Source of the DNA: Paramoeba atlantica
Taxonomy: Eukaryota; Protista; Discosea
NCBI GenBank assembly: GCA_977017575.1
Contig: CDRNVI010000038.1
Coordinates: 1-64,000, forward strand
Reading direction: 5' to 3'
Length of the DNA stretch: 64,000 bases
Under the pieces are notes generated by a model, which was not told where the DNA came from, made no database searches, and saw nothing but the letters and a program-made list of their open reading frames with translations. The position numbers and the translations under genes were made by a program. This document shows, in pieces, positions 19,052-64,000 of the stretch. The stretch's first letter is position 1. Each line of letters starts with the position of its first letter.

Positions 19052-21336
19052 ACCCGGGGTGCGGATTAATATCCAAATGCGCTTTAATATCCAAATAGGT
19101 TTTTTCACTTCAAAATCACATTATGGAAGCTGTTGCATCCGAATGCTTGAAGCGCCATTCGGAAGAGCTGAAATGTCAAGAAACAACTTGGGAAATTATT
19201 TCTGAATGTAGTTCCTTAGGTGATTTTGAGGCATCGCCGTCCGAAGAAGCGCCAAATGGAACGGAAGACGCTCATCAAGTTTATAGGGTGGCAGAAAGTT
19301 CTGACCCAGAAGAAAGTGGAGGATCAGAAAGCAGCGAAGAAGGCAACAGTGAAGAAGATGATACTGACAGTGTGGAAGAAAGCCCAAGCACCGAACAAGT
19401 GAAATTAGGTGGAATCCGCGCACGGGAAAAGCGGCCTGTTTCCTCGAATGGCCGTCGACGCAACGAACTCGTCGATCACAAGGTGAAAAGACGCGTTTTC
19501 GCATATTACGAATCCCTTCCTGCATCTACGAAAGATAGAAAGAAAGGCTTAATGCCTATTTTAAATGCGTTCATAAGCAAGGCATGGCCAACAATGAATT
19601 TTAGGATCACGCGAAAGCGTCAACTTATGAATTGGGGCTGTGCTCCAAGAAAAGGTGGAGGCAAGCGACGTAAGCACAACAGAAGGCATCCACTTTGTCA
19701 TGTAAAGCAGCTTCTTTCATCTTTAATACGAGGTCGTAGAAGCACAAATGCCATAGTTACCTTGCAAATGGTAAAATCTGAAGCACTGCATATTATACGC
19801 GACGGTGTAGATCCAGACGTGCAATCTATTAATTCTGTAAGCGACTCGTGGGTATCTCGGTTTCTGCGACGCTCTGGCTTCTCCCTTCGCAGTGTTCAAC
19901 GCCAAACTACCTTAACCAATGCTGAGCTTCATCAAAAAATTCATTCCCTGCATACTTTTGTTCATCGCACTTTATCCACTAAATTGTTTCGCTGTGTTTT
20001 CAATTTTGATGAAATTCCCTTGTCCCTGCGAGGTTCCATGCGATCACTTAAGACTGTGGCAGATATTGCGGAACAAGATATTCGAGCTTCCATCAACCCT
20101 AACGACCGCAAACGTTGCGCGACTCTTATTTGTGGTGTCGGCGTAGTCATTGACAAAAATTTGAACCCCGTGAAGCACTTTTTTACTAAACCAATGATTC
20201 TCTTCAAGGCTAAAAGCTACATCTTAATCAATGAGACGTTTGATGCTCGAACCACGCGCGGCATAACTGCGAAGGCCGTTGTCAATTCACCATTTTTCAT
20301 CAAGTGCTTCATACCGTTTCTTCAAGCAGAATTTCGCGCACATCGTGTTGAAGGCCCAACTCTTATGATTATGGATTCTGCGCGCCCGCATATTACCACA
20401 GATGTTCTCCAGACGTTTGCAGAAAAGTTACAATCACATGCGGCTGTTCTCCCTGGTGGATGCACATGTTGGCTCCAATGGGTTGACGTTTACTATGCTT
20501 CCCACTACAAGGCAGCTCACACATCCCTATGGGAGGCAGAGCACAGTATCACACGTACTGCAAAGGAAAAGCGTACGTGGTTACACTCCATGGTCGCACG
20601 AGCCCACGACAAAATTACTGCTAACATGAATGTAAAGGATCAATTCGTCAAGTTGGGTTACTTAAACCGTTCACTTGCCCAGTTCCACTCCCCCAAGCTA
20701 GAAAACTATAAATACGATCCGCCGATAATTCCTGCAGACCGCGTGCATCAGCACAAGATAAAAATTTCCCAACAGTTTCAACGCGGCGCACAGTCGGGCA
20801 TTAGAACCGGGCCTCTAGATTCCTTTTTGACGATGCAGTCGACATCAACGCGCCAAGCAAGCAACACGCAAGCCATTGAAGAACTGTAATGTGATCAAGT
20901 CGAAAGATGAAATTGAAGCCTAAGATCCAAGATGCAAGTTGAAAGGAGTTGAAACATAAAATTAAAAGACATCGTGAACGTTATATCTTTCGTATTTCTC
21001 TTATAACATTTATAATGTCATAATGCTTTTTAAAAACGTCCTGCACTGATTAATTAATATTCTAGAAACGTGATTTTCCACGTGTATTTTTTAAAAACAT
21101 CCTGCACTGATTAATTAATATTCTAGAAACGTGATTTTCCACGTGTGTTCTAACACTATGTCTCCCTCGCAGCCCCACCAATCAGCACCTTTCCCACCAA
21201 TCACAGCCCCGCCACACTTCATTTGGATATTAAAGTGCAAGCATTTTAATATTCAAATAGAAATTTTTGCACTTTAATATCCAAATAGCACTTTAATATC
21301 CAAATCCGTATTTGGATATTAATCCGCACCCCGGGT
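19052..21336 (+). mobile_element. Apparently intact pogo-like DNA transposon
   Basis: TIR ACCCGGGGTGCGGATTAATATCCAAAT at both ends with TA duplication; TAATATCCAAAT subterminal repeats; ~58-bp tandem duplication at 21028-21147. Confidence 0.92.
19123..20889 (+). CDS. pogo-like transposase (acidic N-terminus, CENP-B HTH, DDE_1, DD36D)
   Basis: VSDSWVSRFLRR, FNFDEIP, IMDSARPH and WLQWVDV motifs; uninterrupted 588 aa. Confidence 0.92.
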   Translation: MEAVASECLKRHSEELKCQETTWEIISECSSLGDFEASPSEEAPNGTEDAHQVYRVAESSDPEESGGSESSEEGNSEEDDTDSVEESPSTEQVKLGGIRAREKRPVSSNGRRRNELVDHKVKRRVFAYYESLPASTKDRKKGLMPILNAFISKAWPTMNFRITRKRQLMNWGCAPRKGGGKRRKHNRRHPLCHVKQLLSSLIRGRRSTNAIVTLQMVKSEALHIIRDGVDPDVQSINSVSDSWVSRFLRRSGFSLRSVQRQTTLTNAELHQKIHSLHTFVHRTLSTKLFRCVFNFDEIPLSLRGSMRSLKTVADIAEQDIRASINPNDRKRCATLICGVGVVIDKNLNPVKHFFTKPMILFKAKSYILINETFDARTTRGITAKAVVNSPFFIKCFIPFLQAEFRAHRVEGPTLMIMDSARPHITTDVLQTFAEKLQSHAAVLPGGCTCWLQWVDVYYASHYKAAHTSLWEAEHSITRTAKEKRTWLHSMVARAHDKITANMNVKDQFVKLGYLNRSLAQFHSPKLENYKYDPPIIPADRVHQHKIKISQQFQRGAQSGIRTGPLDSFLTMQSTSTRQASNTQAIEEL

Positions 21337-43116: not shown

Positions 43117-45480
43117 TAAGTTGATCCTACGCTGCGCGACTTTCATCGCGAAATAAAAGCGTGGCATATTGAGCCGCAAGACTGCAGATCCATACAGAAG
43201 ACGCCCCACCGCCGCCTCAAGATCATCAAAAGACAATTTATGAAATTTGTCTTTTTGCAGTTTACTGACCACTCTCGGTCCCAGGCAGACCGTATGAGTG
43301 TCGTGGTCGAAAGCCACCCCATTGAAAACATACTTCAAAGCAGGGGGCTGTCCGGCGTCTTTAAAGAGGCCGTTTGCTTTGGAACACCGCTCGTCAATAA
43401 AGCGAGCGTATTCAACGGCATCGTTCGCTGTCCCCGAAAAACGAACTCCGTCGACGTAAACGTCAGTGGCACCTCTGTGAAACGAGAAACGCTCCTGACA
43501 CACCGACCTCTCGCCGGCAATTGCGGCGGTAACAGTGTGCATGATTTCTGGTGCGCAGCGATGACCCATGGGAAGAACGTTCATCTCGAAAACTTCGCTC
43601 AATGTCGATCGAAATCTAAACTTGGGCCGTGCCTTCAAGGGAATACTAATTTGGTAAAAACCACAAGTGAAGTCGCGCTTCACTGCCATAGCATCATGTG
43701 CTTTGTGTAGATATTTGGATGGGTGATACAGCGCAACTTCCGGTTCATAATTTAAAAGCCTGTTGTTGTCATCTCGTGTCCAGGATATAAACCTGCGGCG
43801 TTGATTACCTTCATCGTCGGTTTCAACCACTGTAAAGGGGATCATATATTGCATGGATGGTCTTTTGAGTAGGTCCTTCCCCGAAACCTTGCTTATAACG
43901 CCGGCGCCCTCAAGTAGACGTATTTCTTCCTCGGGCAAAGAACCACGTACCGAAGGCTCGGGGTACGGGCCTGTAGGAACCCATAAAAGTTCATTTAGTA
44001 CCTTGCGAAAACGTGTGGCTGCCGCAGGATTTAACCATTCCTTCACTTTGTCCAATTTAATCACCGGGATTGACTTTTTCACATGGAGGGGTAGACTCAT
44101 ATCCTTCGGTCTAGCGAGCCGCGAGCTACGGCGGGCACATATAACGGAGTGCCTACGGAGATAGGGGACTTCGTGAAAACACTTTGTAACATGAGAGGTT
44201 GTTAAAGTACCGGAAGGAGTGCAGACACTCGTTGTGTCCCGAGGGCCCGTGCCGTTGTAACGCTGTTTGCATTGTATCTGAGCAGTGATTCTATGTTCTG
44301 GTGTTTTGTTAGGTTTTGAACCTCCTGCATGCGCAAATTTCCGAGAGAGATTTCGTGAAACAGATGAGTGATTGCCCCCCTTTTGATAGAGTGCGTCCCG
44401 TACCCCTGACCGAGTATTGATCGTATTTGATGGTCCATCTCGCGGACTGTCGTGTAACAGAGTCGTTGCCCGGGGTTCATGGTTTGGATATGCTGCGCGA
44501 GTTCTGGCGTTCCTGGCCCAGTTACAATGGCGTAAAGGTGTGGTCGAAAAGGGTTTAGGCGTGTGGTCTTTGTGCCCCTCCCCCAATAAATTATCACTTC
44601 GCAGCTTGTTACACTCACGAACTGTTCTCTTCTTAAATCCGCGGTCTCGGTCCAACGCGCCGCTGCCTTCCAGCATAGGAGGCAACACATGCTCTCCTTC
44701 GGATTCAAGTGTCGGCGTAGCTTTTGTAGAAGAATGGGGTTGACGGGCTGCATTTGGCGCGTGGGCTCTAGCCCCCCCTGTGCTTGCAGGGCCTTTATAT
44801 ATAGTTTTAAGGGAGTCGACTCTTCCCCCATTAACTGAAATAAAGTTCGCAAGCCTCCTGCGTAACCCATTCTCGTCGAGCTGGCTAGAGGCAGCGAATG
44901 TAGGAAGAGAACCGCGTTTGTGGAATTTGAAGGAACACCCTTTGCCGCGCAGTACTGCTGCATACGTAGCCAAATTCGCTCCCTGTTGGCCCATGTGGTC
45001 GTGGCCCACATCGGTTCGAGAGCGTCGCTCAGTTGTAGTGTGCGTGGGTCGTTCGGAGGAAGGCGAAGGATGGCTTGGAGAATGGCGTTGCGGTCTGCGG
45101 CGGGTTTTTCTCCTGCGGACTGGTTTAGTGCGCGTATGGGAAGGGACCGACTTCGCGGAGGACGAGTGGAAACAACATGAGGAAGGGGAGGATTGGAAGA
45201 AAGAGGGGGTCGAGGACGCCTCACCGGAGAGTCTCGTCGGGGTAAGCGCGTTTGTAAGGTTGGAGCGGTAGGAGCCCTTTGCCGCCTGAGGCAAGGGGCA
45301 CGAGTAATAGGGGTGGGGGGCATTCCCTAGTGGGAACCCCGTGTTGCGCCGGCGTAACGGACGGCGCCGCCCGCCACCCCTCCGCGAAAATCCTGATTCG
45401 TCGGATGGGAGGGACGAAACTGGTGCTGGGCCTGAGCCATCTGCGGGCAGTCCGCACGAATTTGGCCCGGCTGGTGACAC
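43117..45480 (-). CDS. Reverse transcriptase, VIPER-like copy 2; frame open across YR
   Basis: RDFTCGFYQ, LPMGHRCAP, YVDG. Removing the LINE restores QRRINLLNRCP. Confidence 0.85.
44202..45323 (-). CDS. Tyrosine recombinase, VIPER-like copy 2
   Basis: AARWTE, HSIKRGA, KHQNIESLLRY. Confidence 0.9.
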   Translation of the reverse strand: MPPTPITRAPCLRRQRAPTAPTLQTRLPRRDSPVRRPRPPLSSNPPLPHVVSTRPPRSRSLPIRALNQSAGEKPAADRNAILQAILRLPPNDPRTLQLSDALEPMWATTTWANRERIWLRMQQYCAAKGVPSNSTNAVLFLHSLPLASSTRMGYAGGLRTLFQLMGEESTPLKLYIKALQAQGGLEPTRQMQPVNPILLQKLRRHLNPKESMCCLLCWKAAARWTETADLRREQFVSVTSCEVIIYWGRGTKTTRLNPFRPHLYAIVTGPGTPELAQHIQTMNPGQRLCYTTVREMDHQIRSILGQGYGTHSIKRGAITHLFHEISLGNLRMQEVQNLTKHQNIESLLRYNANSVTTARALGTQRVSALLPVL

Positions 45481-48400
45481 GAGAAGCAGAAAGGCCGACG
45501 ACGGGAGGATCGAACTTGGGGACGACCTCGGAGTCGTTCGTCGAGAACGAGTTGCCCATAACGATCCTTCGGATCATCATCACGATGCAGTCGCTGTTGC
45601 ACGCGTTCGACAGCAACACCCGCAGCGGCCCAGTAGAGATTGCGGAGTTCCTCGATTATGAGTTCTGCCACAGCAAGGTTATGTTTCTCCATCCAACCCT
45701 CCGTCAGGCGAGCAGCGTAGATCCATTCGATAAGGATGTTGAATAAACGGTCCCGCTGCGGTGGCGGGTTGAATCGAACCCCTAGCTGCGGCGCCTCCCG
45801 CAGCTCACGGATGAGGTCTCGGGGCTTGAACAAATCCTCCGTGTCGATCCACGGTTGCCACGTAACCGGGTCGTAGGGGGAGAAGCTTTTGGGGTCTGTA
45901 ATACGTACTCGTTCAAAGGACGGGATTAAAGATTCCACCGGCTGCCCTCCAGGCATCTTTGCCCGAACACGGACGACCGTCAAATCGTGATACGTAATGT
46001 CGGGATGGGGAAAGCGGTATGCCGTATTGACATCACCATCCCACTCAGCGACCAATTCTAAGGACACTGGGTCATTTTGGTGCTTCATGTAAACGTCGCC
46101 TATGACTGTCTGTCGAATGTCATCACCTGGTCGAGACCACACTGCCTCGACAGTGACCTGGTATTCTTTGCGAAGAAGATTAATTATCTTGGTTACAAAT
46201 TCTTCCTTAGCAGTCTGAGTCAATATTCCACGCGCATTTTGGTTGGATCGAATAGCACGGTCTACATGGTCGAGATTAAGGTCTTCATAACGCTGAGGGG
46301 AGCGGGAAGGCTCAACTTGGTCAGGGTTGAGCGTGCTCTGCCGCCGTGGGGGAACATCTCCCGAGTTCTGGGGGGCCGTTAGGGGGTCAGGGTAAGGGCT
46401 GGGGTAAGGAGAAGGGTGTACTGTGCGTCGGTTTCGGCCAGAATAGCGCAGCGAAGGAACCGCGAAAGAGTCTACTGGCGAAGCTGGATCAGGACGAGGT
46501 GGTCGCCCAGCTGGACAAGACAAGGAACGGCGTTTGTCGGGGTCCAAAGGGGAGAGAGGACGTGTTCGCTTAGGGCTGCGGTCTCGCTCATGTCCTGGGT
46601 TCGCCGGCACGCGAAGTCGCTGGGAACGCATAAACAAAGCTGCTGAACAAATGTTCAGCAAAGTCTTACAACCTGGACATAGGATCGTTGCTGGGATTCT
46701 TGGGTGAGGAATTCCAAGTCGTACCATAACTGGTATTTCAAAGGCATGTGAGGGAACGAAGCGGACCTCCGATTTAAGCCAATCATAATTCCCCTTTCGG
46801 GTTGTTACCCTTAAAATATTAGAATACTCCGGATCTTGTTTTAACCTCGCAACCACTTTTTCGTGAAGTACCGCTGCCGTCGTAACTTCATCCATAGGTG
46901 GCAAAGCTGAATTCTCTTCTTCTCCAGTGTAAGGGACGTTTTGGTTTGGCAACCGAGCCCGAGCAGTAGAAGAGTTTATTCGCTCAAGAGCTTGGTAGCG
47001 TGATGCTAAATATGCCGCTTCACGAACCTTTGAACAAGACGTCACACCTAGACCTCCTTTTTTCAGGGGCAGCCGGGCCATCTCCACCTGCTTTTCCGTC
47101 AGTGGACCGAGCCACTTCTTCAATACGCTCTCGACATTGTCATTGAATTTGGTGGAGGCCTCCTTTGTCACAGATGGCGGATGGACGCGCATGGCGTATT
47201 GTTGCTTAACATTGATACACTGCGAAAGAAGTATCAATGCAACATTGCTTAATCCCATTGCTTTTAATCTCTGGAAGCTTGTATCTTGTTTATCCACTGC
47301 TTCCATTAATCTTTTCTTGATCTGATTCTCTTTGCCGATGTGTGCCCCCAATACTTTGACCGCTTCTTCCTCATTGCGCACACCCTGTACCTTCAGGCTT
47401 GGTGGGATTGGCTGAGCCGACCCCTCCCCAAACCATATACACTTCTTTGTTGCTAGCGTGAGCGAGTATTGAACCATCAACTCTTGGAGTCTCTGAAACG
47501 CTTTTTCGATTTGAGCACTTTTTAGGGAGGACATGGTAACGTCATCGATGAAAGCGTGAAACTCCACTTCGGGAAATTCCATCGACAGTGTTTCCAGCAT
47601 GGGTTGAAAAAAGGCGCAATAATACATGGAAGCCAATGGTGAACCCTGCCGCAGACCTGATGTGCTTAGGACTGTTCCGACCAATTTTCCTTCTGAACCA
47701 TAATACAGCAATTCAGAGGCCCCCGAGTATTCGACCTCGAAGAATCGCTGGAAAGGGCGGAGTGCTCTGAAGGCTAAAACGTGCTTTGCTATATCCATTC
47801 TGCTCGGCGAGTTAAAGGCATTTTTAACGTCTACGGATAGAATGGAATATCCATTGCTGTGGCGATTCCGAAGTTGGTGCACTATTTTCTCACATCCCGC
47901 TTTTGAGAAAACGCCCTGTTGCATGGGTGCAAATAACGGAGCCAGCGTATGCTCATACCTTTGCATTAGGACTATGCCGGCCAATTTATTGAGCACCTCA
48001 CCCATTGCGACTGGGCGAACCCCTCCACAACTTTTGGGAATGGCAACCAGCCTAGCGCGGTTGATGCGACGAATCACGTCCTTGCCCAGGAAACCGTTGA
48101 TGAGATCACATGTCATGTGACACAAATTGATGCAGCAAAGTTCATCATCAAGCAGCAGCCGTACAATGCTATCCGTCATCCCTGTTGGACCCGGATTGGC
48201 CCCTTTCGCCAGGCGCTTTCCAGCAGCACGGAGTTCTTCCATTTCAATCCCAGACATTATTGGCGCGTCTGCTGGGATTCTGAAGTCGCATTCTTTTTGA
48301 GGATGCAATTCTGACAACTTGTCCAAGGTTTCCTCATCCGGAAGATTACTTGGCGTGAAGGCTTGATCTAATACTCTGGCTGCTTTTGACGCGCACCCTT

Positions 48401-48992
48401 CAGTAACCAACCGCGTTGCTCTTTTGATAGCTCTCCGGTCATTCAAGGCGGCCTGATCTTCCTTGTCATCGTTATTTTTAGGATATGGTCTTTGTCTCCT
48501 ACTCCTCCCACTGGCGCGGCGTACTCCTGCAAGCGACAGCTTCATCACCGACAGCAGTCGATGCCAAATAATATTCCTCTGCTGGTGATCGGCACTGATG
48601 TAATCCTTTACAATTTCACGAAAAGTTGCGATGACGCATGGAATAAGGTCAGGACTGATATTCCGAACGGTGGGTATTGGTAAGAGATCAACTCCCTCCC
48701 CCTGTACGTTGTCTGGGGTCAGTGTGATCAGATGATTCTCGATAGTACTATCACGTAACACGGTAACATCAATCGGAGGTGGCGCTTGATGCCAGATAAT
48801 GCGGAAGATTCTCACGTTTTCTTGGGGCGGCAGAGATCCTGTGTATTCCTGTTCTTCTTTGTACCCTGAGATCCCCGTGTATTGCATTGAGAGTTTCCCC
48901 ATCCCTCCACGCTTGTTATGCGTTCGCACTACCTTACCGCACGCCATATTGATCTTTTCCTGATTTGCAAAAGCCCACACTATCGAACACAA
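45327..48992 (-). CDS. Chimeric 1221-aa ORF: lineage-B non-LTR RT fused in frame to VIPER Gag
   Basis: RLVAIPK..GVRP, VDVKNAFN, GLRQGSPL, FIDD, LPLKKGGLG up to CPGCKTLLN; then Gag homologous to 22986. Confidence 0.8.
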   Translation of the reverse strand: MCSIVWAFANQEKINMACGKVVRTHNKRGGMGKLSMQYTGISGYKEEQEYTGSLPPQENVRIFRIIWHQAPPPIDVTVLRDSTIENHLITLTPDNVQGEGVDLLPIPTVRNISPDLIPCVIATFREIVKDYISADHQQRNIIWHRLLSVMKLSLAGVRRASGRSRRQRPYPKNNDDKEDQAALNDRRAIKRATRLVTEGCASKAARVLDQAFTPSNLPDEETLDKLSELHPQKECDFRIPADAPIMSGIEMEELRAAGKRLAKGANPGPTGMTDSIVRLLLDDELCCINLCHMTCDLINGFLGKDVIRRINRARLVAIPKSCGGVRPVAMGEVLNKLAGIVLMQRYEHTLAPLFAPMQQGVFSKAGCEKIVHQLRNRHSNGYSILSVDVKNAFNSPSRMDIAKHVLAFRALRPFQRFFEVEYSGASELLYYGSEGKLVGTVLSTSGLRQGSPLASMYYCAFFQPMLETLSMEFPEVEFHAFIDDVTMSSLKSAQIEKAFQRLQELMVQYSLTLATKKCIWFGEGSAQPIPPSLKVQGVRNEEEAVKVLGAHIGKENQIKKRLMEAVDKQDTSFQRLKAMGLSNVALILLSQCINVKQQYAMRVHPPSVTKEASTKFNDNVESVLKKWLGPLTEKQVEMARLPLKKGGLGVTSCSKVREAAYLASRYQALERINSSTARARLPNQNVPYTGEEENSALPPMDEVTTAAVLHEKVVARLKQDPEYSNILRVTTRKGNYDWLKSEVRFVPSHAFEIPVMVRLGIPHPRIPATILCPGCKTLLNICSAALFMRSQRLRVPANPGHERDRSPKRTRPLSPLDPDKRRSLSCPAGRPPRPDPASPVDSFAVPSLRYSGRNRRTVHPSPYPSPYPDPLTAPQNSGDVPPRRQSTLNPDQVEPSRSPQRYEDLNLDHVDRAIRSNQNARGILTQTAKEEFVTKIINLLRKEYQVTVEAVWSRPGDDIRQTVIGDVYMKHQNDPVSLELVAEWDGDVNTAYRFPHPDITYHDLTVVRVRAKMPGGQPVESLIPSFERVRITDPKSFSPYDPVTWQPWIDTEDLFKPRDLIRELREAPQLGVRFNPPPQRDRLFNILIEWIYAARLTEGWMEKHNLAVAELIIEELRNLYWAAAGVAVERVQQRLHRDDDPKDRYGQLVLDERLRGRPQVRSSRRRPFCFSCHQPGQIRADCPQMAQAQHQFRPSHPTNQDFRGGVAGGAVRYAGATRGSH

Positions 48993-52318: not shown

Positions 52319-55300
52319 TTTTTTTTTTTTTTTTTTTTTTTTTATGAATTTAAAACAAGCAATCAAATTAGCAATTCTTTTCATTTCCACAGAAGTATAT
52401 TTTCTTTTTCTTTTTTCTCAGCCCAAAACTAGCAATTCAATCTCCCCTAAGTATATACGACAAATAAGACACAGTAAAAATAAAAACAAGCAATCCAGAC
52501 CCAATCCATTCGCGCGTTCCGGACCGGATCTTTCGACCACTCCACGGCCTGACTTGTGAACCCTTCCCTTGCTATACGGGAGGGCGCAGGCGCGGGCCTG
52601 TGTCGACAGCGACACGGTCACGAAACAGGATGCTGGCCGACGGGGAGGAGATTCACTACCCGTGTACTACCTCACTTGGGGTACCTAGCCCTCGCGGGCT
52701 AGGCGTGAGTATAGACTCTGTCGACTCGACCAGCATCCCGACCAGCTCTTCATGGGCGCAAACGTGTTCCCGTGCCAAAAGGGGCGCGGTCGACGCTTAC
52801 GAACGTTTACACCTCCGTAGGAGAGAGCGGATCCTCAGGAAGTAAACGAGTAACCATCATGCGCGCCTGAAGGCGCATGAGGGTGACGTTCAGCTCCGTA
52901 AAGATTCTGCTCGTGGCTTCCCCCTCTGTCAATAACCCACACGAGGCATGTGAGAGACGTTCCCCAACTTTGCGGATCACTGCTGAAGCACTGGGGCTCC
53001 AGGCGCCATAGCTTTCGACCACCATGGCCGTAAAGTCACACCCGGCGTCAACGGCTTCCCGGCGCTGCCTACCCTTCTCCATGGAGGAATAATGCTCGGC
53101 AAACGACCCCGCGGTTACCCAGCTAGCGTTCCGGACTTTGTCCGTATATTTTAGTTGCTGAGCATGGGTGACCGCGAAGTCAAGCACGATGGGATTCCCC
53201 AAGAAAAGACTGCGCAGGTATACGTCGCCAGGTCTGGTGAGGCCCCCCCCTGGGCCTCTGTTGCCAAGACTTTTCTCCCGTTGTGGGGCCAGTTTGGCTC
53301 TGCTGCAAAGGTCCGTGAAGTGATCTGCCACGGCATTGTGCCTCGCGATAATTCCGTTGTCGTGCTTGCAAGACAATGCGTGGTCCCCTTTTGTGTCGAG
53401 TGGAAGAGGGCATTTCGGCATAGGACACTTCCCTTCTTCAGGGTAAACATCGATCCCTAACCACCAACGGGCCAAGGTTCGAAATGCTGTAGGGGTAAAG
53501 GAATACCCCATGTCCTTAGACGGGGTTACAAAAGCCCAGCTGCTTGCCCCTTTACCGCACTGAGATATCCATCGTGCTCGTGTCCGCACATCTGACATTT
53601 CGTATGATTGGGAGAAATCGTGGGCCGCGATCGCGTAGCTGATGTCTCGCTGGCGAGGGATCTTCCCTTTCAACCATTGCGGGGGGGTCGTATCAGCACA
53701 ATCCTCCGAGGCGTACAGCGGTGTAGAAAAGTGTATTTCCTCAGGTGTATGCATGGTGCGGGAAGTTATGCGCAGGGGTAGGCAGATCTCCGAGGGAGGC
53801 TGATCGATGACACCTAGGGGGCGTTTCCTCTTTCTATGGGAGAAAGGGCTGCCAACTGCTTTTTCGCAAGGGGCGTTCGGCGCTGTGAGGATACGGCCTC
53901 GCGAGTCAAGTAAAGATATTCCGGCCTTCTTGTTGATATCCCTGACAGCTTCCGCGAATCCATCTGCGTCAGTGGGGTTCCATGAGTCTCTGGCCGCACA
54001 GAAAGCGACGGAAGATACGTAGGCGGCCGTGGCGTGCAACGCTGCGGACCTTAATCCAAAACCGCCGTGCCGCTTCAAACGCTGTACCTGAGATCGCGCG
54101 TGGCGATCCAGGGGGCAAATTATTGCTTCGGTAGCAGTCATAAGAAAGCCGTCGAGTCGGGTGCATAGATGGGTTATGGCTTGGGGCGGTGTACTTCTCA
54201 GAGCGTACACCATCTTGCAAAACCCAGCACACTGTCTGATAAGGGCAAGTGCGACCTGTGGGTCCCGGATGGTGGCTATCGCGTCAAGCGTGTCCTCCGC
54301 GGGGCCTATGGCATGTGTCTCGAGGTACTCTGAGCAATGTTCTGGCGATCCCACCGGGCTCCCAAGGATGTCGAAATTGCCGTGGACATTGATCTTATTG
54401 GAGGGGATATCTGGAAATTCGGAGGCGTGGTGTGCCGATGCCGGGGGTGTAACGATCTCACATTTAGACATGTTAAGATGTAAACCCCATTGTGGACCTA
54501 CTCGGGCAATCGTGTCGAGGGCGTTCCTAACGTCTTGCGCTTGTCCAATGAGGACGCCGTCATCGAGGTACCATAACTGGGCAAAGAGGTTAGCCTGAAG
54601 AGCAATTGCTTCTGCGAGCGCTAAGGACACTAGCGAGAAGAGTAGCGGTCCTAAAGGGTCGCCCTGTTGCACTCCCTCTTCAGAAGAAAGTGATCGGAGT
54701 CCATAGGTGAGGGAGCTGGGGTTCGAGTAACACCAGCTTATCCATGGGAATAGCTCTGGGAAGTGCTCTTGGACTAGAGGAAGAAAACAAGTCCTGCTCA
54801 CGTTGTTGAAAGCGTTCCGTAGGTCAACTTTGCAGAGTACAAAGTTGGAGCAGTCCATGTTTGATGAGATGGCCAAGCGGCACATGTGGATAATGCGTTC
54901 ATTCCCAGCTGGGGTAGCCACACCAAATTGCCGTCCTGCAAAAAGAGTTCTAGCCTTGGACCTGACTGCGTTGCATGCAGCCTTGCTCACTAACCGTCGC
55001 AAAGTTTCCCCGGCGGCAATTGGGCGAACGTCGTTTTCACCTTTCTCTAGGGCACACAGTCGGGCTCCCGCAAAGTGACTCTGTACTTCCTTTGGTGCTT
55101 TTCCTGCGAGGAGATGATTAGCGAGCTTCGTAAGGGATTCGAGTGGGTCTGTGTTCTTGCCTCCGTGGGTAAGGAGCGCTGCCTGTAAATGCTCGGGGCG
55201 TAATCCCAAGGTACCCGCGGAGGAGCCTCTGTGAAAGCCCTTGATTGCCTTCGCGATTTCAGATTCATCCAACTCCAGGGGCTCTGCTGCGGGGAAAAAG

Positions 55301-55374
55301 TTGGCGGCCCCCGGAACGAGCAAACGGCAGGGGTGCTTTTCTTGTAATTTAGAGAATGTGTCGTCGTCGTCCGT
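52319..55374 (-). mobile_element. 5'-truncated CRE/SLACS-like element (lineage A); ORF 52807-55323
   Basis: RPIAAGE, VDLRNAFN, GVQQGDPLGP, YLDD, CPMPKC..HALSC, RHN, RPGD, LDFAVT; 3' UTR and poly(A). Confidence 0.88.
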
Positions 55375-58045: not shown

Positions 58046-58649
58046 TTTTTTTTTTTTTTTTTTTTTTTTTTATACGATTTTTTACATATAAAAAATCCAT
58101 TTATGAATAAATTTTCTTTTTGCCTTTGTAATCGAGTTTTTTTTTTTTTACTATATAAGAACTAGCAAACCAACTTTCCCACTTCCCAACCTTCTCACTT
58201 CCCAACTTTCCCACTTCCCAACTTTCCCACTTCCCCTTACCGAACTTCCACCTTTCCAGGGAGGGTAAGGTCTCCCTCTGCCTCGCCTCGCACCTACGCC
58301 ACAAGAGGGTTTTTGATGATAAAGAAGGGGGGAGGCGAGGTCTTCTCCAATCCATTCGCGCTCCCATCTTCCTCATGCATGTTCCGAACCGGGTCTTTCG
58401 ACCACTCCCAGCTTGCCTTGTTAACCCTTCTCTTGTTGTACGAGAGGGCGCAAGCAATGGGCCTGTGCCGACAGCGGCACGGTCGCTGAGCATGATGCTG
58501 GCCGACGGGGAGGAACAAAGTTCCCTACCCTTGTCCTACCTCACTTGGGGTACCTAGCCCTGACGGACTAGGCGTGAGCATAGACCCTGTCGGCACCGAC
58601 CAGCATCCGGACCAGCGGTTTATGTCCCAGTGGGTATTCCCGAGATCCC

Positions 58650-61600
58650 TTAGGCCCCTTCCAGGGGAGCGTCAGGGTCACTGACGACTATCCTAGAGAC
58701 CATCATCCGGGCCTGGGAGCGCATGAGAGCCACGTTCAGCTCTTTGAGAAGGTCATTTCGGGCTTGAGTGTCTGTGAGTAGACCGTTTGACGCGTTTGCG
58801 CGTAACGCCCCCACCTTCCACAAAACAGCCATCGCGCTTTTACTCCAAGAGCCAAAGGATTCAACTACCATGGCCGTAAAAAGTAATTTCGCTTCCTCCG
58901 CTTCCTGGCGTTGTTTATCCTTCGTTGCTGAGTAGTGTTCAGCGAAAGATCCCGCAGCCACCCAGCTAGCATTCCGGACAGAGTCCAAATACTTTAGTTG
59001 CTGTGCGTGGGTGACTGCGAAGTCTAACACCATACCACTTCCCAGGGTGTAATTCGGGAGAAACACGTCAGAAGGTCTGGTGAGACCCCCTCTTGGACCA
59101 CGATTTCCCAGGCTTTTCTCCCTTTGCGGAGCTATGTCGGCTTTTCTGCAGAATGCTGTGAATTGCTCACAGACCGCGTTGTGACGGGTGATGAGGCCAT
59201 GTCCGTTCTTACATAGCAATGCATGTTCCCCATTTTTCTGCAGAGGTAATGTGCATCCCTTCGCTGGGCAAGGGCGATCTTCTTGATAGATGTCGGATCC
59301 CAGCCACCAGCGGGACAGCGTGCGGAACTCTGTTGGTGTGAAGGCGTATCCTTTGCTCCTAGAGGGCGTCACGAAAGCCCAGCTACCTGCTCCCTTACCC
59401 GACTCTGAAACCCACCGTGCGCGAGTGCGAGGGTCAGCCTGCTCGTATGCTGTGGTGAATTCCTGCTGTGAGATAGCCTGGCTGAGTTGCTGCTGTCGAG
59501 GGATGACCATCTCCGGCGCGGTTGCCCTGTCCGCTTCCATTTTGTTTTGAGTGCTCCGTGGGCGTTTCCTTTTCGGGAGGAAGTTGTGATGGTGGCCTGA
59601 GTATGGGAGTGGCTTGTCCTGCTTGGGTGTGCGCCCCGTGTTGGGATCCACTAGCGCTACTCCTGCTTTACGGTTTACGTCTTGTACCGAAATGGCGAAT
59701 CCATCAGCCTCTGTAGGATCCCAGTCGTCTATGTCGGCGGCGTGCGCGACGGAAGAAACGTAAGCGGCTGTCGCGTGGAGTGTTGCAGACCTAAGGCCGA
59801 AACCTCCGTGGCGTTTCCTTCGTTGGATTTGGTCACGTGCGTGGGGTTCCAGGGGGAAAAGTGCCCACTCGACAGCTTTAAGAACGGTTTCGTCTAGTAG
59901 GCTACAAAGTTGAAAAAGAGCCTGGGGGGGTGTGGTGCGGAGAGCGTACACCATTTGGCAGAAGCCAGTGCACTGGCGGATGAGGGCGATGGCAACTTGT
60001 GGATCGCCTATTAGCCCTATTGCTGCGAGAGTCTCGCGTGCGGGTTCGATGGCGTGAGACATTAGGAACTCCGCGCAGTGCTCCGCAGACCCAATCGGGG
60101 ATCCGAGAATATCGAAATTCCCGTCAACACGAATTTTGGCGGTAGGTATTTCCGGAAATAAAGTCGTGTGATGGGCTGAGGCAGGTGGCGTTATTATTTC
60201 ACACTTGTTCGGATTCAGAAATAGCCCGCATTGTGAACCAACCTCGGAAAAAACATCAAGCGCCTTTCGAACCTCCGCCGCCTCCCCCATGAGAACTCCG
60301 TCGTCCAAATACCATAGTTGCGAATCTAGGTTTGATCGGGATGATATTTCCTCGGTTACCCCAGAAAGGACTAGAGAGAAGAGAAGCGGACCCAATGGGT
60401 CACCTTGCTGGACGCCTTCGGCTGAGGATAGGAAGTGATTCCCGTAGGTAAGACAACTCGGGTTTGTGTAGCACCATTCCACCCAGGGTGAAAGTTCTGG
60501 AAAATTGAGACGTGTGAGCAAAGTGAAGACAGGCCTGCTGACGTTGTTGAACGCATTTCTGAGGTCTACCTTACAGAGAACAAGACTGTCGCTCCCCATG
60601 TTGTTTAGCATTGTTTTCTGGCACAGATGAATTACTCGTTCGGCCCCCGCGGATGCAGCCACACCATACTGTCTTCCCCGGAATAAAGTTTCAGCCCTCT
60701 CCTTTACGGCGACGCATGCCGCTTTGCTTACTAGACGTCTGAGGGTTTCGCCTGCTGCTATGGGTCGGACATCTTCTTCACCTTTCTCCAGAGCGCAGAG
60801 ACGGGCTCCAGCGTAGAACAGTTGTACCTCTGGCGGTGCCTTTCCTTGGAGCATGTGGTTCACGAGGCGAGTGAGGGACGAAAGAGGACCCACCTTCTTG
60901 TCGGCGTGTTCCAAAATGGCGGCCTGGATGTGTTCTGGACGTAGACCCATTGTTCCGGCAGAAGACCCTCTGCGAAAACTTTCGACCGCTTTCCTGACTT
61001 CCACTTCCTCCAGACGCAGGGGATTACCCTCAATCGGTGGAAGATCGTTCTCAAGTGGGTTTTCGTGAGGATTTGGGTGCTTTTCTAGAAGCTTCGCAAG
61101 GGTCTCCTCGTTGTCCGGCGCCATGGGTGCTGCGGTTAGAGCGGCTATTCCCCTAGAGTATTCCCCTTGACGTGAGAGTATTTCTGCCCTGATTGCCGCT
61201 CTTTCTTCTTCATTTTCGGAACTTCTAGGCTTGGAGCGTTTTTTGGCGTGATCCTTTAGGGCCTGTTCCCAGAGCAAGAGGTACTCCCCTTCTAGCCAGA
61301 GTTCCATGCTTTTTTCCACGTATGTAGAGTATGACGTGTGTCCTTTGCGACCGCCTCGGTAAGGTGCAGGTAAGACGCATTTAGGGAGCATTGCCAGTAA
61401 CGTCCATGCCTCCACTGTGTTTTCTTGCACAGCAGATGTCATGACCTGTGTCAAAATGCTCGCCCATAGAAACCTACAGGAATGGGGGACATCTTTGCAT
61501 GTGCTTATGGGCAGCGCGCAGATAGAGCTCAACGTTGGTAGCATGTTTTCTGGAGGAATTTCAGTTGCATTTTCGAGACTTGTCGTTGGCCTAGGTGGGG

Positions 61601-62228
61601 TTTGAGATCGCACGGGGTGGTTACGGCCTTTGCACTGTTTGGGGTGAGAATTCTCCTTGTTCTTATCGTAGTGCCCGCCGCAGTCCTTGCAAAGAAATCT
61701 TCCCTCCCCCTCCCACCAAGTGGTTGGTACGCTTTCTCCGTGTCGGTGGGCCACATGATTGTAAAATGCTTGCCATTGCCCACCGTGAGGAGGAGTCTTC
61801 CAAGTGCATCCTTCAGCTGGGCATACGCGCTGAGTACAGTGCTGCGGGATCGGTACCGGATTTATGTTCTTGCGCTTCGAGGCCTTGTTTGGAGAAGGTA
61901 CTTGGGCGTCAAGAACCTCCGGTGTGTTTCTCGGGCTTGCTTCCACGACGAGGGAGTGATTCGTCTCTTCATCTTCCGTCATTCTTCCCGTGTCCGGCGT
62001 GGGAGCCTCTCCGGCGATCTTGGCGGCTCTTTTTGCCCAGTGTTTGGGGATATGTTTGGGAATCGGTGTTGTGTACAAGAGTTCATCGTAGGAGCTCTGA
62101 CCGGGAATTAAATGTGCGTTTCCTGCAAATTGGTCCCAAGCACCCGTGTTGTGCGAAATTTCTTCCTGACGGAAAGAGTCGTCGTCCATGGGTACTGCAT
62201 TCGCATCGAAGAGGTCGTCGTGTGGCAT
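58650..62228 (-). CDS. 1192-aa polyprotein: LsmAD-like motif, two zinc fingers, RT, CCHC finger, RLE
   Basis: WDQFAGN..SYDELLYTT; CPAEGC..H..H; CKDC..H..C; GVQQGDPLGP; YLDD; CPAKGC..HALLC; RHN..EK..RPSD..LDFAVT. Confidence 0.92.
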   Translation of the reverse strand: MPHDDLFDANAVPMDDDSFRQEEISHNTGAWDQFAGNAHLIPGQSSYDELLYTTPIPKHIPKHWAKRAAKIAGEAPTPDTGRMTEDEETNHSLVVEASPRNTPEVLDAQVPSPNKASKRKNINPVPIPQHCTQRVCPAEGCTWKTPPHGGQWQAFYNHVAHRHGESVPTTWWEGEGRFLCKDCGGHYDKNKENSHPKQCKGRNHPVRSQTPPRPTTSLENATEIPPENMLPTLSSICALPISTCKDVPHSCRFLWASILTQVMTSAVQENTVEAWTLLAMLPKCVLPAPYRGGRKGHTSYSTYVEKSMELWLEGEYLLLWEQALKDHAKKRSKPRSSENEEERAAIRAEILSRQGEYSRGIAALTAAPMAPDNEETLAKLLEKHPNPHENPLENDLPPIEGNPLRLEEVEVRKAVESFRRGSSAGTMGLRPEHIQAAILEHADKKVGPLSSLTRLVNHMLQGKAPPEVQLFYAGARLCALEKGEEDVRPIAAGETLRRLVSKAACVAVKERAETLFRGRQYGVAASAGAERVIHLCQKTMLNNMGSDSLVLCKVDLRNAFNNVSRPVFTLLTRLNFPELSPWVEWCYTNPSCLTYGNHFLSSAEGVQQGDPLGPLLFSLVLSGVTEEISSRSNLDSQLWYLDDGVLMGEAAEVRKALDVFSEVGSQCGLFLNPNKCEIITPPASAHHTTLFPEIPTAKIRVDGNFDILGSPIGSAEHCAEFLMSHAIEPARETLAAIGLIGDPQVAIALIRQCTGFCQMVYALRTTPPQALFQLCSLLDETVLKAVEWALFPLEPHARDQIQRRKRHGGFGLRSATLHATAAYVSSVAHAADIDDWDPTEADGFAISVQDVNRKAGVALVDPNTGRTPKQDKPLPYSGHHHNFLPKRKRPRSTQNKMEADRATAPEMVIPRQQQLSQAISQQEFTTAYEQADPRTRARWVSESGKGAGSWAFVTPSRSKGYAFTPTEFRTLSRWWLGSDIYQEDRPCPAKGCTLPLQKNGEHALLCKNGHGLITRHNAVCEQFTAFCRKADIAPQREKSLGNRGPRGGLTRPSDVFLPNYTLGSGMVLDFAVTHAQQLKYLDSVRNASWVAAGSFAEHYSATKDKQRQEAEEAKLLFTAMVVESFGSWSKSAMAVLWKVGALRANASNGLLTDTQARNDLLKELNVALMRSQARMMVSRIVVSDPDAPLEGA

Positions 62229-62272
62229 GGTGAGACCCTGCTAGGGAAAATAGTGGGTTAATAAAAATAATT

Positions 62273-62304
62273 CAACAAGGTACAGAAACTGTATCTTTAT
62301 CGTT
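62273..62304 (-). other. Spliced-leader-like exon sequence (not followed by a GT intron)
   Basis: AACGATAAAGATACAGTTTCTGTACCTTGTTG shares GATACAGTTTCTGTAC and the GTAC-N4-TTG ending with trypanosomatid SL exons. Confidence 0.7.
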
Positions 62305-62313
62305 ACTTTATCG

Positions 62314-63654
62314 TTTTTTTTTTTTTTTTTTTTTTTTTTGCGTGGTCTCAGCTTTCGGTTTTCAGAAAATATCACTTTTTTTTTCAATCAATCAAAACTT
62401 TCAGCTGTGTAGGTCTACGAATTGATAGAACCTAGCCATGCGGCCTTTGGTAGGCTGTCGCGTAATTGCGTGATATAGTCTCCTAAATTTCCTCTCGTAT
62501 ATTTCTTTATAAGTATACTTATAAAGAAATCAACTTAATATGCACTTGCGTACATCCCAGTCTTGCCTTGCGAACTTCCCAGAAACTGGCGTAACTGGGC
62601 GTAGACTTCGTTTCCATTTAAGTCTTGGAGTAATAACTTGAAGTCCATCTCCACTGTCTTCCTATCCAACATGGCTGCATCCGCAAGTGCATGTATCAGA
62701 AATCTTGTGTTCTGGTGGAGAGAACCGCAAGAAAAGATCGGAAGGCATTGAAACGCGAACTCTGGAATCATACCGGTTGTAACGTAGGTATCTTTCTTCC
62801 GTTTAATTACGTCTTGCATTAGTTTCACGCAAGTTTTAGATTGGTTCGATGGCGCAAGCTCGTGTATTATAGACACGTCGTAGAAGATTTCTCCGGTGCT
62901 CCAGAAAATGGCCAGATCCGGCCCCGATCGGTATAGCTGTCGACCGGTGCAACATTTTTCATGAGTCATTTTATTCTCGGGTTCGACCTTTCGGCTACAC
63001 ACACCACACCGCCACGTACTGAAGGCTCGCGGCTCTTTTTCACACGGTATCCCCGCCTTATTGGCTAAGTCGAACAGGTATTTCACCAAGCTATTATGTT
63101 TTGTTGTGGCATTAAAACCGTAGCACTGCACGCATCCAGGTATGTGGTGTAGAGCAGATTGACTGTTCAGTATTGTTTTGCACCCGGGGCATAACAGCTT
63201 CTCAGGTAGACGAGGATGGGCTATTCCTAACCGCGTCATAATGGCCATCTCGAAGTGTCGCGATGGGACGAATCTAGCGGCAGACGTTAACCAGTCGTAA
63301 CTTCCCTTGCGAGTAGTGGCGCTCAGTATTTTGGAAATATTTGGATTCTGTCTCAGTCTCTCCAGTACTTCCTCATGCTCTAAGGCTGCGATCGTTTTGT
63401 CATCTGTCGGGGGCTTTCGGTTTTGACCTTCGTTGGCAAGCGCTATATGATTTTCCACTGATCCACTCTGAGCAGAAAAGGATTTTTGTCGCTCATATGA
63501 GGAATACAATGAAGCTTCATACGCTGCTGCGCGAATTTTACTGCAGGACGTCAAACCTAAACCTCCCTTTTTCGCTGGTAACCGAGCCATCTCGATCTGA
63601 TTCGCCGTTAGGGATCCAAGCCATGTGCTCAAAACGTCTTCAACTTTCTCATCA
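62314..63654 (-). pseudogene. 3' part of a lineage-B element (ORF 62535-63674, UTR, polyA), cut off by a VIPER-like terminus
   Basis: LPAKKGGLG, CPGC..HIPGC, KHN, GPDL, YDVS; poly(A) at 62314-62339. Confidence 0.85.
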
Positions 63655-64000
63655 GAAATCCACGGCGAGGGCATCCGGACATTAACATAATCAAATCACG
63701 AATATGATAAAGTAAAGAAGTATCTAATTGAAAACATAGCTAATGTTGAACGTCTACTTCTCGTTATGCTATGGTTCCTCTTATGATGCTAGTAGATTTC
63801 TCCTATTGCTGAATAACGCGCTGTATAAATATTCAAAAAGGGGCCCTGGTACCACACAATTAAACTCAGAATGTTGAAGAAAAGGGAATACTTTGTGAAG
63901 GGGCTTAGCCCCCCACGCTCCGCAGCCGTGGCTGGGGGTTGGTGGGTGGGCTTCGAAAACGTGTAAATAAACTTTGAAGAATAGCCTTCACACAACACAA
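63655..64000 (-). mobile_element. 3' terminus of another VIPER-like element running off the window
   Basis: Ends CCCTCGCCGTGGATTTC; shares the GC-rich block with 33379-33445. Confidence 0.5.

Follow-up and report, generated by a model that had tools for sequence, protein, structure and literature searches.

An Ataxin-2-type LsmAD domain at the N-terminus of single-ORF non-LTR retrotransposons from a Perkinsela-like kinetoplastid

CRE1, CRE2, SLACS and CZAR are non-LTR retrotransposons of the restriction-like endonuclease (RLE) type that are associated with the spliced leader (SL). How RLE-type elements with a single open reading frame (ORF) secure their own RNA is poorly understood. Formation of the L1 ribonucleoprotein depends on the poly(A)-binding protein PABPC1, and the MLLE domain of PABP is known to bind the PAM2 motifs of Ataxin-2 and other proteins. 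Ataxin-2 itself, the protein of SCA2 and of ALS risk, has the LsmAD domain as the hallmark of its family, the partners and function of this domain being not known (PMC12898128). According to the same 2026 survey, practically all LsmAD sequences are Ataxin-2 orthologues (PMC12898128).

We have analysed a stretch of DNA of 64,000 nucleotides, referred to here as the window, from an assembly deposited for Paramoeba atlantica. It contains an RLE-type element whose protein starts with an LsmAD. The parts of the element are collected in Table 1.

Table 1 Positions of the parts of the retrotransposon copy in the window (residue numbers are those of the 1192-aa ORF)
Feature	Position	Strand	Basis or remark
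Full-length retrotransposon copy	58137..62313	(-)	SL relic, 5' UTR, single ORF, 3' UTR and short poly(A); read from the sequence
Poly(A) of another element	62314-62339		Adjoins the spliced-leader relic at 62273-62313
Spliced-leader relic at the 5' end of the element	62273..62313	(-)	Terminates ...GATACAGTTTCTGTACCTTGTTG
5' UTR of the element			44 nt, between SL relic and ORF
Intact ORF, 1192 aa	58650..62228	(-)	Uninterrupted; stop codon counted in the coordinates
LsmAD domain, residues ~22-100	61929..62165	(-)	Pfam, BLASTP, hhalign and profile search; core 62007-62138
Linker, residues 94-133, disordered and fast-evolving	61830..61949	(-)	pLDDT 32-44; dN/dS 0.2-0.75
Two zinc-finger-like motifs, residues 134-196	61641..61829	(-)	C-x4-C...H-x4-H, then GRF-C-x2-C...H...C
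Reverse transcriptase (RT) core, residues 482-680	60189..60785	(-)	Pfam RVT_1; YLDDG at residue 640
Putative RLE, residues 987-1080	58989..59270	(-)	CCHC, then RHN, PSD and LDF; motif only
3' UTR of ~500 nt, then 13-A poly(A) run	58137-58149	(-)	Read from the sequence

The copy has the hallmarks of a non-LTR element, namely a poly(A) 3' end, dispersed insertions and a 5'-truncated relative, which lies in the window at 52807-55323 (-) and is 59% identical from residue 394 onwards. Its 3' boundary is seen from the contigs of other copies, which part ways at ~58150, just before the 13-A run. The Pfam match to RVT_1 (residues 482-680) has an E-value of 3.6e-17, and the closest solved relatives of the RT are the R2 retrotransposon proteins 8gh6 and 8ibw. 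The RLE is assigned by motif pattern, with CCHC at residues 987-1006, RHN at 1015, PSD at 1052 and LDF at 1068 in a pattern search, a profile or structure match to a known RLE not having been obtained; the region is 55-83% identical among families and can be aligned with the relatives from other organisms up to residue ~1185. The cysteines and histidines of the zinc fingers are invariant in 15 family members, and this region has a pLDDT of 69-83 in the AF2 model. The linker behind the LsmAD has large insertions and deletions across families, with length differences of more than 100 residues; other families have a much longer one with a K/R-rich stretch, which is nearly missing from the window copy. 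Two further features of the window may be recorded here. Directly upstream of the copy, the C-terminal portion of another element, with its endonuclease, occupies 62535-63674 (-), and the ORF at 19123-20889 (+) encodes a transposase DNA-binding domain of the Tc5 type.

The initial annotation of this DNA had described an LsmAD-like motif at 62007-62138 (-), in frame with zinc fingers, RT and RLE in one intact ORF. This interval corresponds to residues 31-74 of the 1192-aa ORF, the motif reads as it was quoted, and the layout is borne out, with the RLE recognised by motif. Pfam LsmAD (PF06741) matches residues 44-91 of the window copy with 19.8 bits in the full protein and with 25.3 bits in a scan restricted to the first 100 residues; with a gathering threshold of 25 bits the window copy taken alone is borderline. 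In the same genome, sister families reach 36.9, 32.0 and 27.4 bits with matches that cover profile positions 5-71 of 72, and about 100 six-frame matches in the genome are above the threshold. In BLASTP the first 100 residues are 53% identical over 53 aa to a Pbp1-like protein of the host (E 3e-17). An alignment of 8 element modules, compared by hhalign with one of 53 LSm+LsmAD regions of Ataxin-2, matched with a probability of 99.7% and an E-value of 2.9e-26; the 79 aligned columns cover the whole LsmAD, from its H..G.WDQF start to its EE..(H/Y)S.V end. Chance resemblance is rejected at this E-value. A profile built from the elements alone retrieves 963 proteins from 1.84 billion, and among the sampled matches outside the elements Pfam finds LsmAD in 96 of 99, SM-ATX in 45 of 99 and PAM2 in 14 of 99. 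Of the 10 positions that are invariant or nearly so in the Ataxin-2 LsmAD, 9 (W, Q, F, N, E, Y, T, T and A) show no variation among the elements and the host gene. By these sequence and profile comparisons the N-terminal residues ~22-100 are a complete LsmAD, homologous to that of Ataxin-2. The motif originally noticed is thus confirmed by Pfam in the sister families, by hhalign and by the element-only profile, within a domain wider than the interval first given.

An AF2 model of the module, which is acidic, has short helices at residues 18-24, 33-36, 49-52, 62-73 and 87-96 (pLDDT 60-82), and the model of the host LsmAD has the same helix pattern. A search of solved structures with the LsmAD profile gave matches at chance level only; no LsmAD structure exists. 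The other parts of Ataxin-2 are absent from the element, SM-ATX (PF14438) by Pfam and PAM2 by Pfam together with a search for PAM2-like patterns, and the ORF begins ~20 residues ahead of the LsmAD. Word-indexed protein searches were uninformative in their blanks: the element N-terminus found one protein only, from the same organism, and the N-terminus of the host Pbp1 found none at E up to 0.001.

In the 45.7-Mb assembly, translated in six frames, the first 100 residues match at least 150 places with identities of 47-100%, and 71 of the LsmAD matches listed lie in open frames of at least 1100 codons. Eight families were separated in the loci that were read, and further families (P0010, P0016, P0017 and P0018) come from a public assembly whose source organism is the same or nearly identical. 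There are at least ten diverged families of LsmAD-bearing elements, and all those found are from one organism. The window element has six near-identical copies with six unrelated 5' flanks; these are therefore separate insertions, and the family has recently been active. Between families the LsmAD is 40-69% identical among six full-length proteins, tracking the zinc fingers, RT and RLE, and the linker is 12-29% identical. When families are compared in pairs by the Nei-Gojobori method, the LsmAD has dN/dS values of 0.07-0.12. The zinc-finger and RT-proximal regions have values of 0.05-0.13, and two linkers have values of 0.2-0.75. Judged by these ratios, the LsmAD, as constrained as the zinc fingers and RT, has been retained by purifying selection, which is equally strong on the catalytic core. 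The initial annotation had allowed for a one-off chimera of a host mRNA with the element, which is contradicted by the at least 150 copies, the six unrelated flanks and an identity to the host gene of only 53%.

Sequences resembling the module also occur elsewhere. Tandem arrays with a period of ~2.28 kb (G000 C21:6-11630 and C22:137166-155647) have units with an open frame of 170-200 codons that is ~60% identical to residues 21-95 of the LsmAD module. The protein P0031 (2389 aa, ENA) has 22 short matches to positions 39-60 of the element LsmAD profile, spaced ~102 residues apart and lacking WDQF; this may be a repeat protein that resembles LsmAD by chance or in part.

The host Pbp1-like gene is intronless and is present in two nearly identical copies (G000 C44:330705, L031:1060-3195, and C66:48548, L032), which may be alleles or a duplication. 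It encodes SM-ATX (31.7 bits on C44) followed by a full LsmAD (49-53 bits), together with a PAM2-like LNPNARAFTP that resembles the PAM2-like motif described for Perkinsela (PMC12898128). A maximum-likelihood tree was built from 83 LsmAD segments. The 18 modules from elements all fall into a single clade in it (support 99/94), and this clade and the host C44 gene are set apart from the 64 other LsmADs (support 100/97). Shared composition or sparse sampling of close kinetoplastid Pbp1 sequences could contribute in part to the sister position of the host gene. In the tree of the zinc finger–RT–RLE region the LsmAD-bearing families are again one clade (support 100), nested among relatives without LsmAD. 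These relatives, which among the matches listed come from the sponge Ephydatia, dinoflagellates and many metagenome contigs, are 30-42% identical to the element. The nearest of those with a named source are the ones from the sponge and the dinoflagellates, and no trypanosomatid is among the source names that the 120 listed RT-RLE matches carry. Alignment of the relatives with the element starts at the zinc fingers and continues to the C-terminus, leaving the first ~110-135 residues unaligned; ahead of the fingers the relatives have extensions of another kind (Prim-Pol, ubiquitin or none recognisable). The piece that the elements share with the host corresponds to residues ~113-215 of the host protein; being internal, it did not arise by simply joining the 5' end of a host mRNA to an element. 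The simplest reading of the two trees is a single old capture of the LsmAD segment from a Pbp1 of the host lineage, on the stem of the element clade. A captured host module had been proposed in the initial annotation, and the well-supported grouping with a host gene that is 53% identical upholds this. The host of the elements is a Perkinsela-like kinetoplastid, through whose large radiation of element families the LsmAD has been inherited vertically. Bodo saltans was considered as the host on account of a 213-aa Pbp1 entry named in PMC12898128 and was rejected, the sequence of that entry being different from the host gene.

A second RT lineage, with a weakly similar RT, is represented in the window at 45327-48992 (-) by a 1221-aa ORF without LsmAD. 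One member of this lineage (L062:2197-4250, ENA ERZ24900291 ctg3359l) is headed by an LsmAD module, which nests inside the element LsmAD clade in the tree. This indicates that the module passed between elements and was not captured from the host a second time. The assembly also has, on an AT-rich contig of 37% GC, a canonical Ataxin-2 gene with two short GT-AG introns inside its LsmAD (L033, G000 C163:167722-170829, minus strand). It groups with ordinary Ataxin-2 sequences in the tree, and its source is probably a second eukaryote in the assembly.

The 5' ends of the elements record the RNA from which they were made. In all eight families inspected, the ATG is preceded at a distance of 30-60 nt by a relic of a spliced leader of kinetoplastid type, and a foreign poly(A) lies ahead of the relic in every case. 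At the 5' junctions read (14 of 14) the foreign poly(A) abuts the relic, at slightly different positions. The DNA of the host Pbp1-like gene has no SL relic. From the relic and the poly(A) it follows that the copies were made from trans-spliced, polyadenylated mRNA. The junctions are consistent with spliced-leader targeting, yet the target here is the relic on other elements; as read from these junctions, the SL relic is a landing site for further insertions, giving head-to-tail nests. The element sequence was located in DNA runs of one study, and one small run guessed to be RNA gave no match.

An observation on related elements bears on what the LsmAD might do. In the sister group, two elements from JGI metagenome contigs (P0191 and P0194), both 40% identical to the window element over RT-RLE, have a complete PABP MLLE domain C-terminal to the endonuclease (47-49 bits), at residues 1557-1620 in P0191 and 1079-1143 in P0194. 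Together with the LsmAD capture, this means that related elements have twice taken modules from the PABP/Ataxin-2 network.

In summary, a one-ORF, RLE-type non-LTR ancestor captured the LsmAD of a Pbp1/Ataxin-2 of the host lineage once, leaving behind LSm and PAM2. The domain was placed at the extreme N-terminus, joined by the disordered linker to the zinc fingers, RT and endonuclease. There, we propose, it may act as a self-contained protein-binding adaptor recognising the ligand of the Ataxin-2 LsmAD. As the LsmAD would be the first part to leave the ribosome, the nascent protein could dock onto a Pbp1/PABP-type mRNP, that on the SL-capped, polyadenylated mRNA of the element itself. Such docking would give cis-preference, or else stabilisation and translation of the RNA, as the ORF1 protein does elsewhere. 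That all families inspected were copied from trans-spliced, polyadenylated mRNA favours an adaptor, and in T. brucei an mRNA is expressed more highly when PBP1, LSM12, MKT1 or PABP is tethered to it (bioRxiv 10.1101/2020.03.02.973057). The MLLE fusions of the sister group lend independent support to an adaptor for the PABP/Pbp1 mRNP. The selection of the LsmAD by itself, with neither LSm nor PAM2, argues for a binding function independent of these.

Since no partner of LsmAD is known in any organism (PMC12898128), the adaptor step is one that we infer. The contacts that have been described involve other parts of Ataxin-2 and Pbp1: LSM12 contacts the LSm domain and PABP the PAM2 motif (PMC11166328), and yeast Mkt1 docks at residues 491-549 of Pbp1 (PMC12345631); the element has no counterpart of any of these. 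On its own, human LsmAD folds poorly and shows no RNA binding (PMC11898529). A complex prediction for residues 18-100 of the element with the LSm domain of the host Pbp1 scored 0.01, below the mark, in a run made without controls, and gives no indication on binding in either direction. An adaptor role onto the PABP/Pbp1 mRNP is what the LsmAD probably has. Taken as one explanation, the capture, vertical inheritance and selection together with the adaptor role have in our estimate a probability of roughly 0.55. A more far-reaching form can be put forward tentatively, as a possibility that we would not yet bet on: the LsmAD would dock autonomously onto some component of the PABP/Pbp1 mRNP, the RLE clade would have tapped this network at least twice, by LsmAD and by MLLE, and the nascent enzyme would grip its own poly(A) mRNA with no need of an ORF1.

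Several other accounts of the module were weighed. The element LsmAD might be a decoy or mimic that competes with the host Pbp1 for its ligand and so blunts Pbp1-dependent control, such as sequestration or repression of the element RNA, with no recruitment of the complex. A module that keeps the invariant residues of Ataxin-2, unaccompanied by LSm and PAM2, could indeed occupy the ligand and build no Pbp1 complex, and the high copy number would suit such a role. However, a decoy could do without the N-terminal fusion in cis to the RT protein that every family has, the MLLE fusions of the sister group suggest recruitment and not blockade, and we know of no Pbp1-based restriction of retroelements; we regard a decoy as unlikely. 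The reverse direction of transfer, in which the LsmAD of the host C44 and C66 genes would derive from the elements, could appeal to the position of the host gene as the closest relative of the element modules in the tree, but this gene has the universal order of SM-ATX then LsmAD, with its PAM2-like LNPNARAFTP, as found across eukaryotes. Nor could the similarity be an artefact in the form of chance, which the hhalign E of 3e-26 excludes, or of a single chimeric copy, which is excluded by the at least 150 copies and six flanks. Reversal and artefact together are in our view extremely improbable.

Two of the rivals concern the functions that the initial annotation had suggested, a chaperone in the place of ORF1 and the routing of the element into granules. 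In one, the LsmAD helices, a basic linker and the zinc fingers would bind the element RNA directly. The element is single-ORF and has no ORF1, there are K/R-rich linkers in several families, and deletion of LsmAD in Drosophila lowers the contacts of Ataxin-2 with its target RNA (PMC7946432); yet purified human LsmAD fails to bind RNA (PMC11898529), the module is acidic and the basic linker is unconserved and nearly absent from the very copy studied here, so that direct RNA binding seems to us decidedly unlikely. In the other, the LsmAD would be a targeting signal, with RNA granules or, as proposed for human ATXN2, Golgi/ER membranes as the destination. Ataxin-2 and Pbp1 are granule proteins, and a deletion within human LsmAD is said, in work cited in PMC12898128, to disperse the Golgi. 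A mini-Ataxin-2 lacking LsmAD still enters stress granules, however, for which PAM2 is necessary and sufficient (PMC11166328), and the proposed trafficking motifs are weakly conserved (PMC12898128); we give a targeting signal similarly little weight. The entry into stress granules without LsmAD (PMC11166328) and the lack of a known LsmAD partner (PMC12898128) weaken both ideas, and granule routing and an ORF1-like chaperone are thus somewhat disfavoured.

To return to the adaptor, its interest lies in the fact that a whole radiation of elements keeps a host mRNP domain under selection at the level of the RT and that its relatives carry MLLE. The kept LsmAD and the MLLE of the relatives point to the poly(A)/PABP/Ataxin-2 complex as a recurring interface with the host. 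If the docking reading is true, the element would be a natural minimal construct, and a compact bait, for finding the LsmAD ligand.

In a full-text search of the literature we found no report of an LsmAD in a retrotransposon or together with a reverse transcriptase, in line with the initial annotation, which knew of no such element, and none of an MLLE in non-LTR retrotransposons. The main text and supplements of the 2026 catalogue of Ataxin-2 chimeras, so far as these were accessible to us, do not mention reverse transcriptase. With no prior report found, the LsmAD appears to be a new accessory domain for non-LTR retrotransposons. LsmAD does occur in other proteins outside the Ataxin-2 family. 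One type combines PDZ, two or three LsmADs and RRM and includes a diplonemid protein; the proteins concerned are P0019 (Diplonema papillatum KAJ9472136.1), P0023, P0028, P0032 and P0040. The fungal protein P0030 (Tephrocybe rancida KAG6907410.1) has three LsmADs and a protein kinase. These proteins speak against the view that LsmAD is limited to Ataxin-2 orthologues.

Compared with Ataxin-2/Pbp1, including the kinetoplastid PBP1, the element shares the whole LsmAD of ~70 residues, its invariant residues and the predicted pattern of short helices, but it lacks LSm (SM-ATX), PAM2 and the long disordered tail, and its LsmAD stands alone at the N-terminus of an RT protein. With R2 and with CRE1, CRE2, SLACS and CZAR it has in common the single ORF, N-terminal zinc fingers, RT, C-terminal CCHC with putative RLE, and poly(A). 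Poly(A) tails that abut SL sequence, as expected for SL-targeting elements, may be a further likeness to the CRE1/CRE2/SLACS/CZAR group; the name CRE-like, given in the initial annotation, is a provisional one. It differs from R2 and the CRE-type elements in the LsmAD ahead of the zinc fingers and in the SL relic at its own 5' end. The capture of accessory domains by LINE-like elements (RRM in ORF1, esterase, PHD) follows the same logic, a host module of RNA metabolism being added to the machinery of retrotransposition; here, in contrast, the module is part of the RT polyprotein instead of a separate ORF1, and its source is Ataxin-2.
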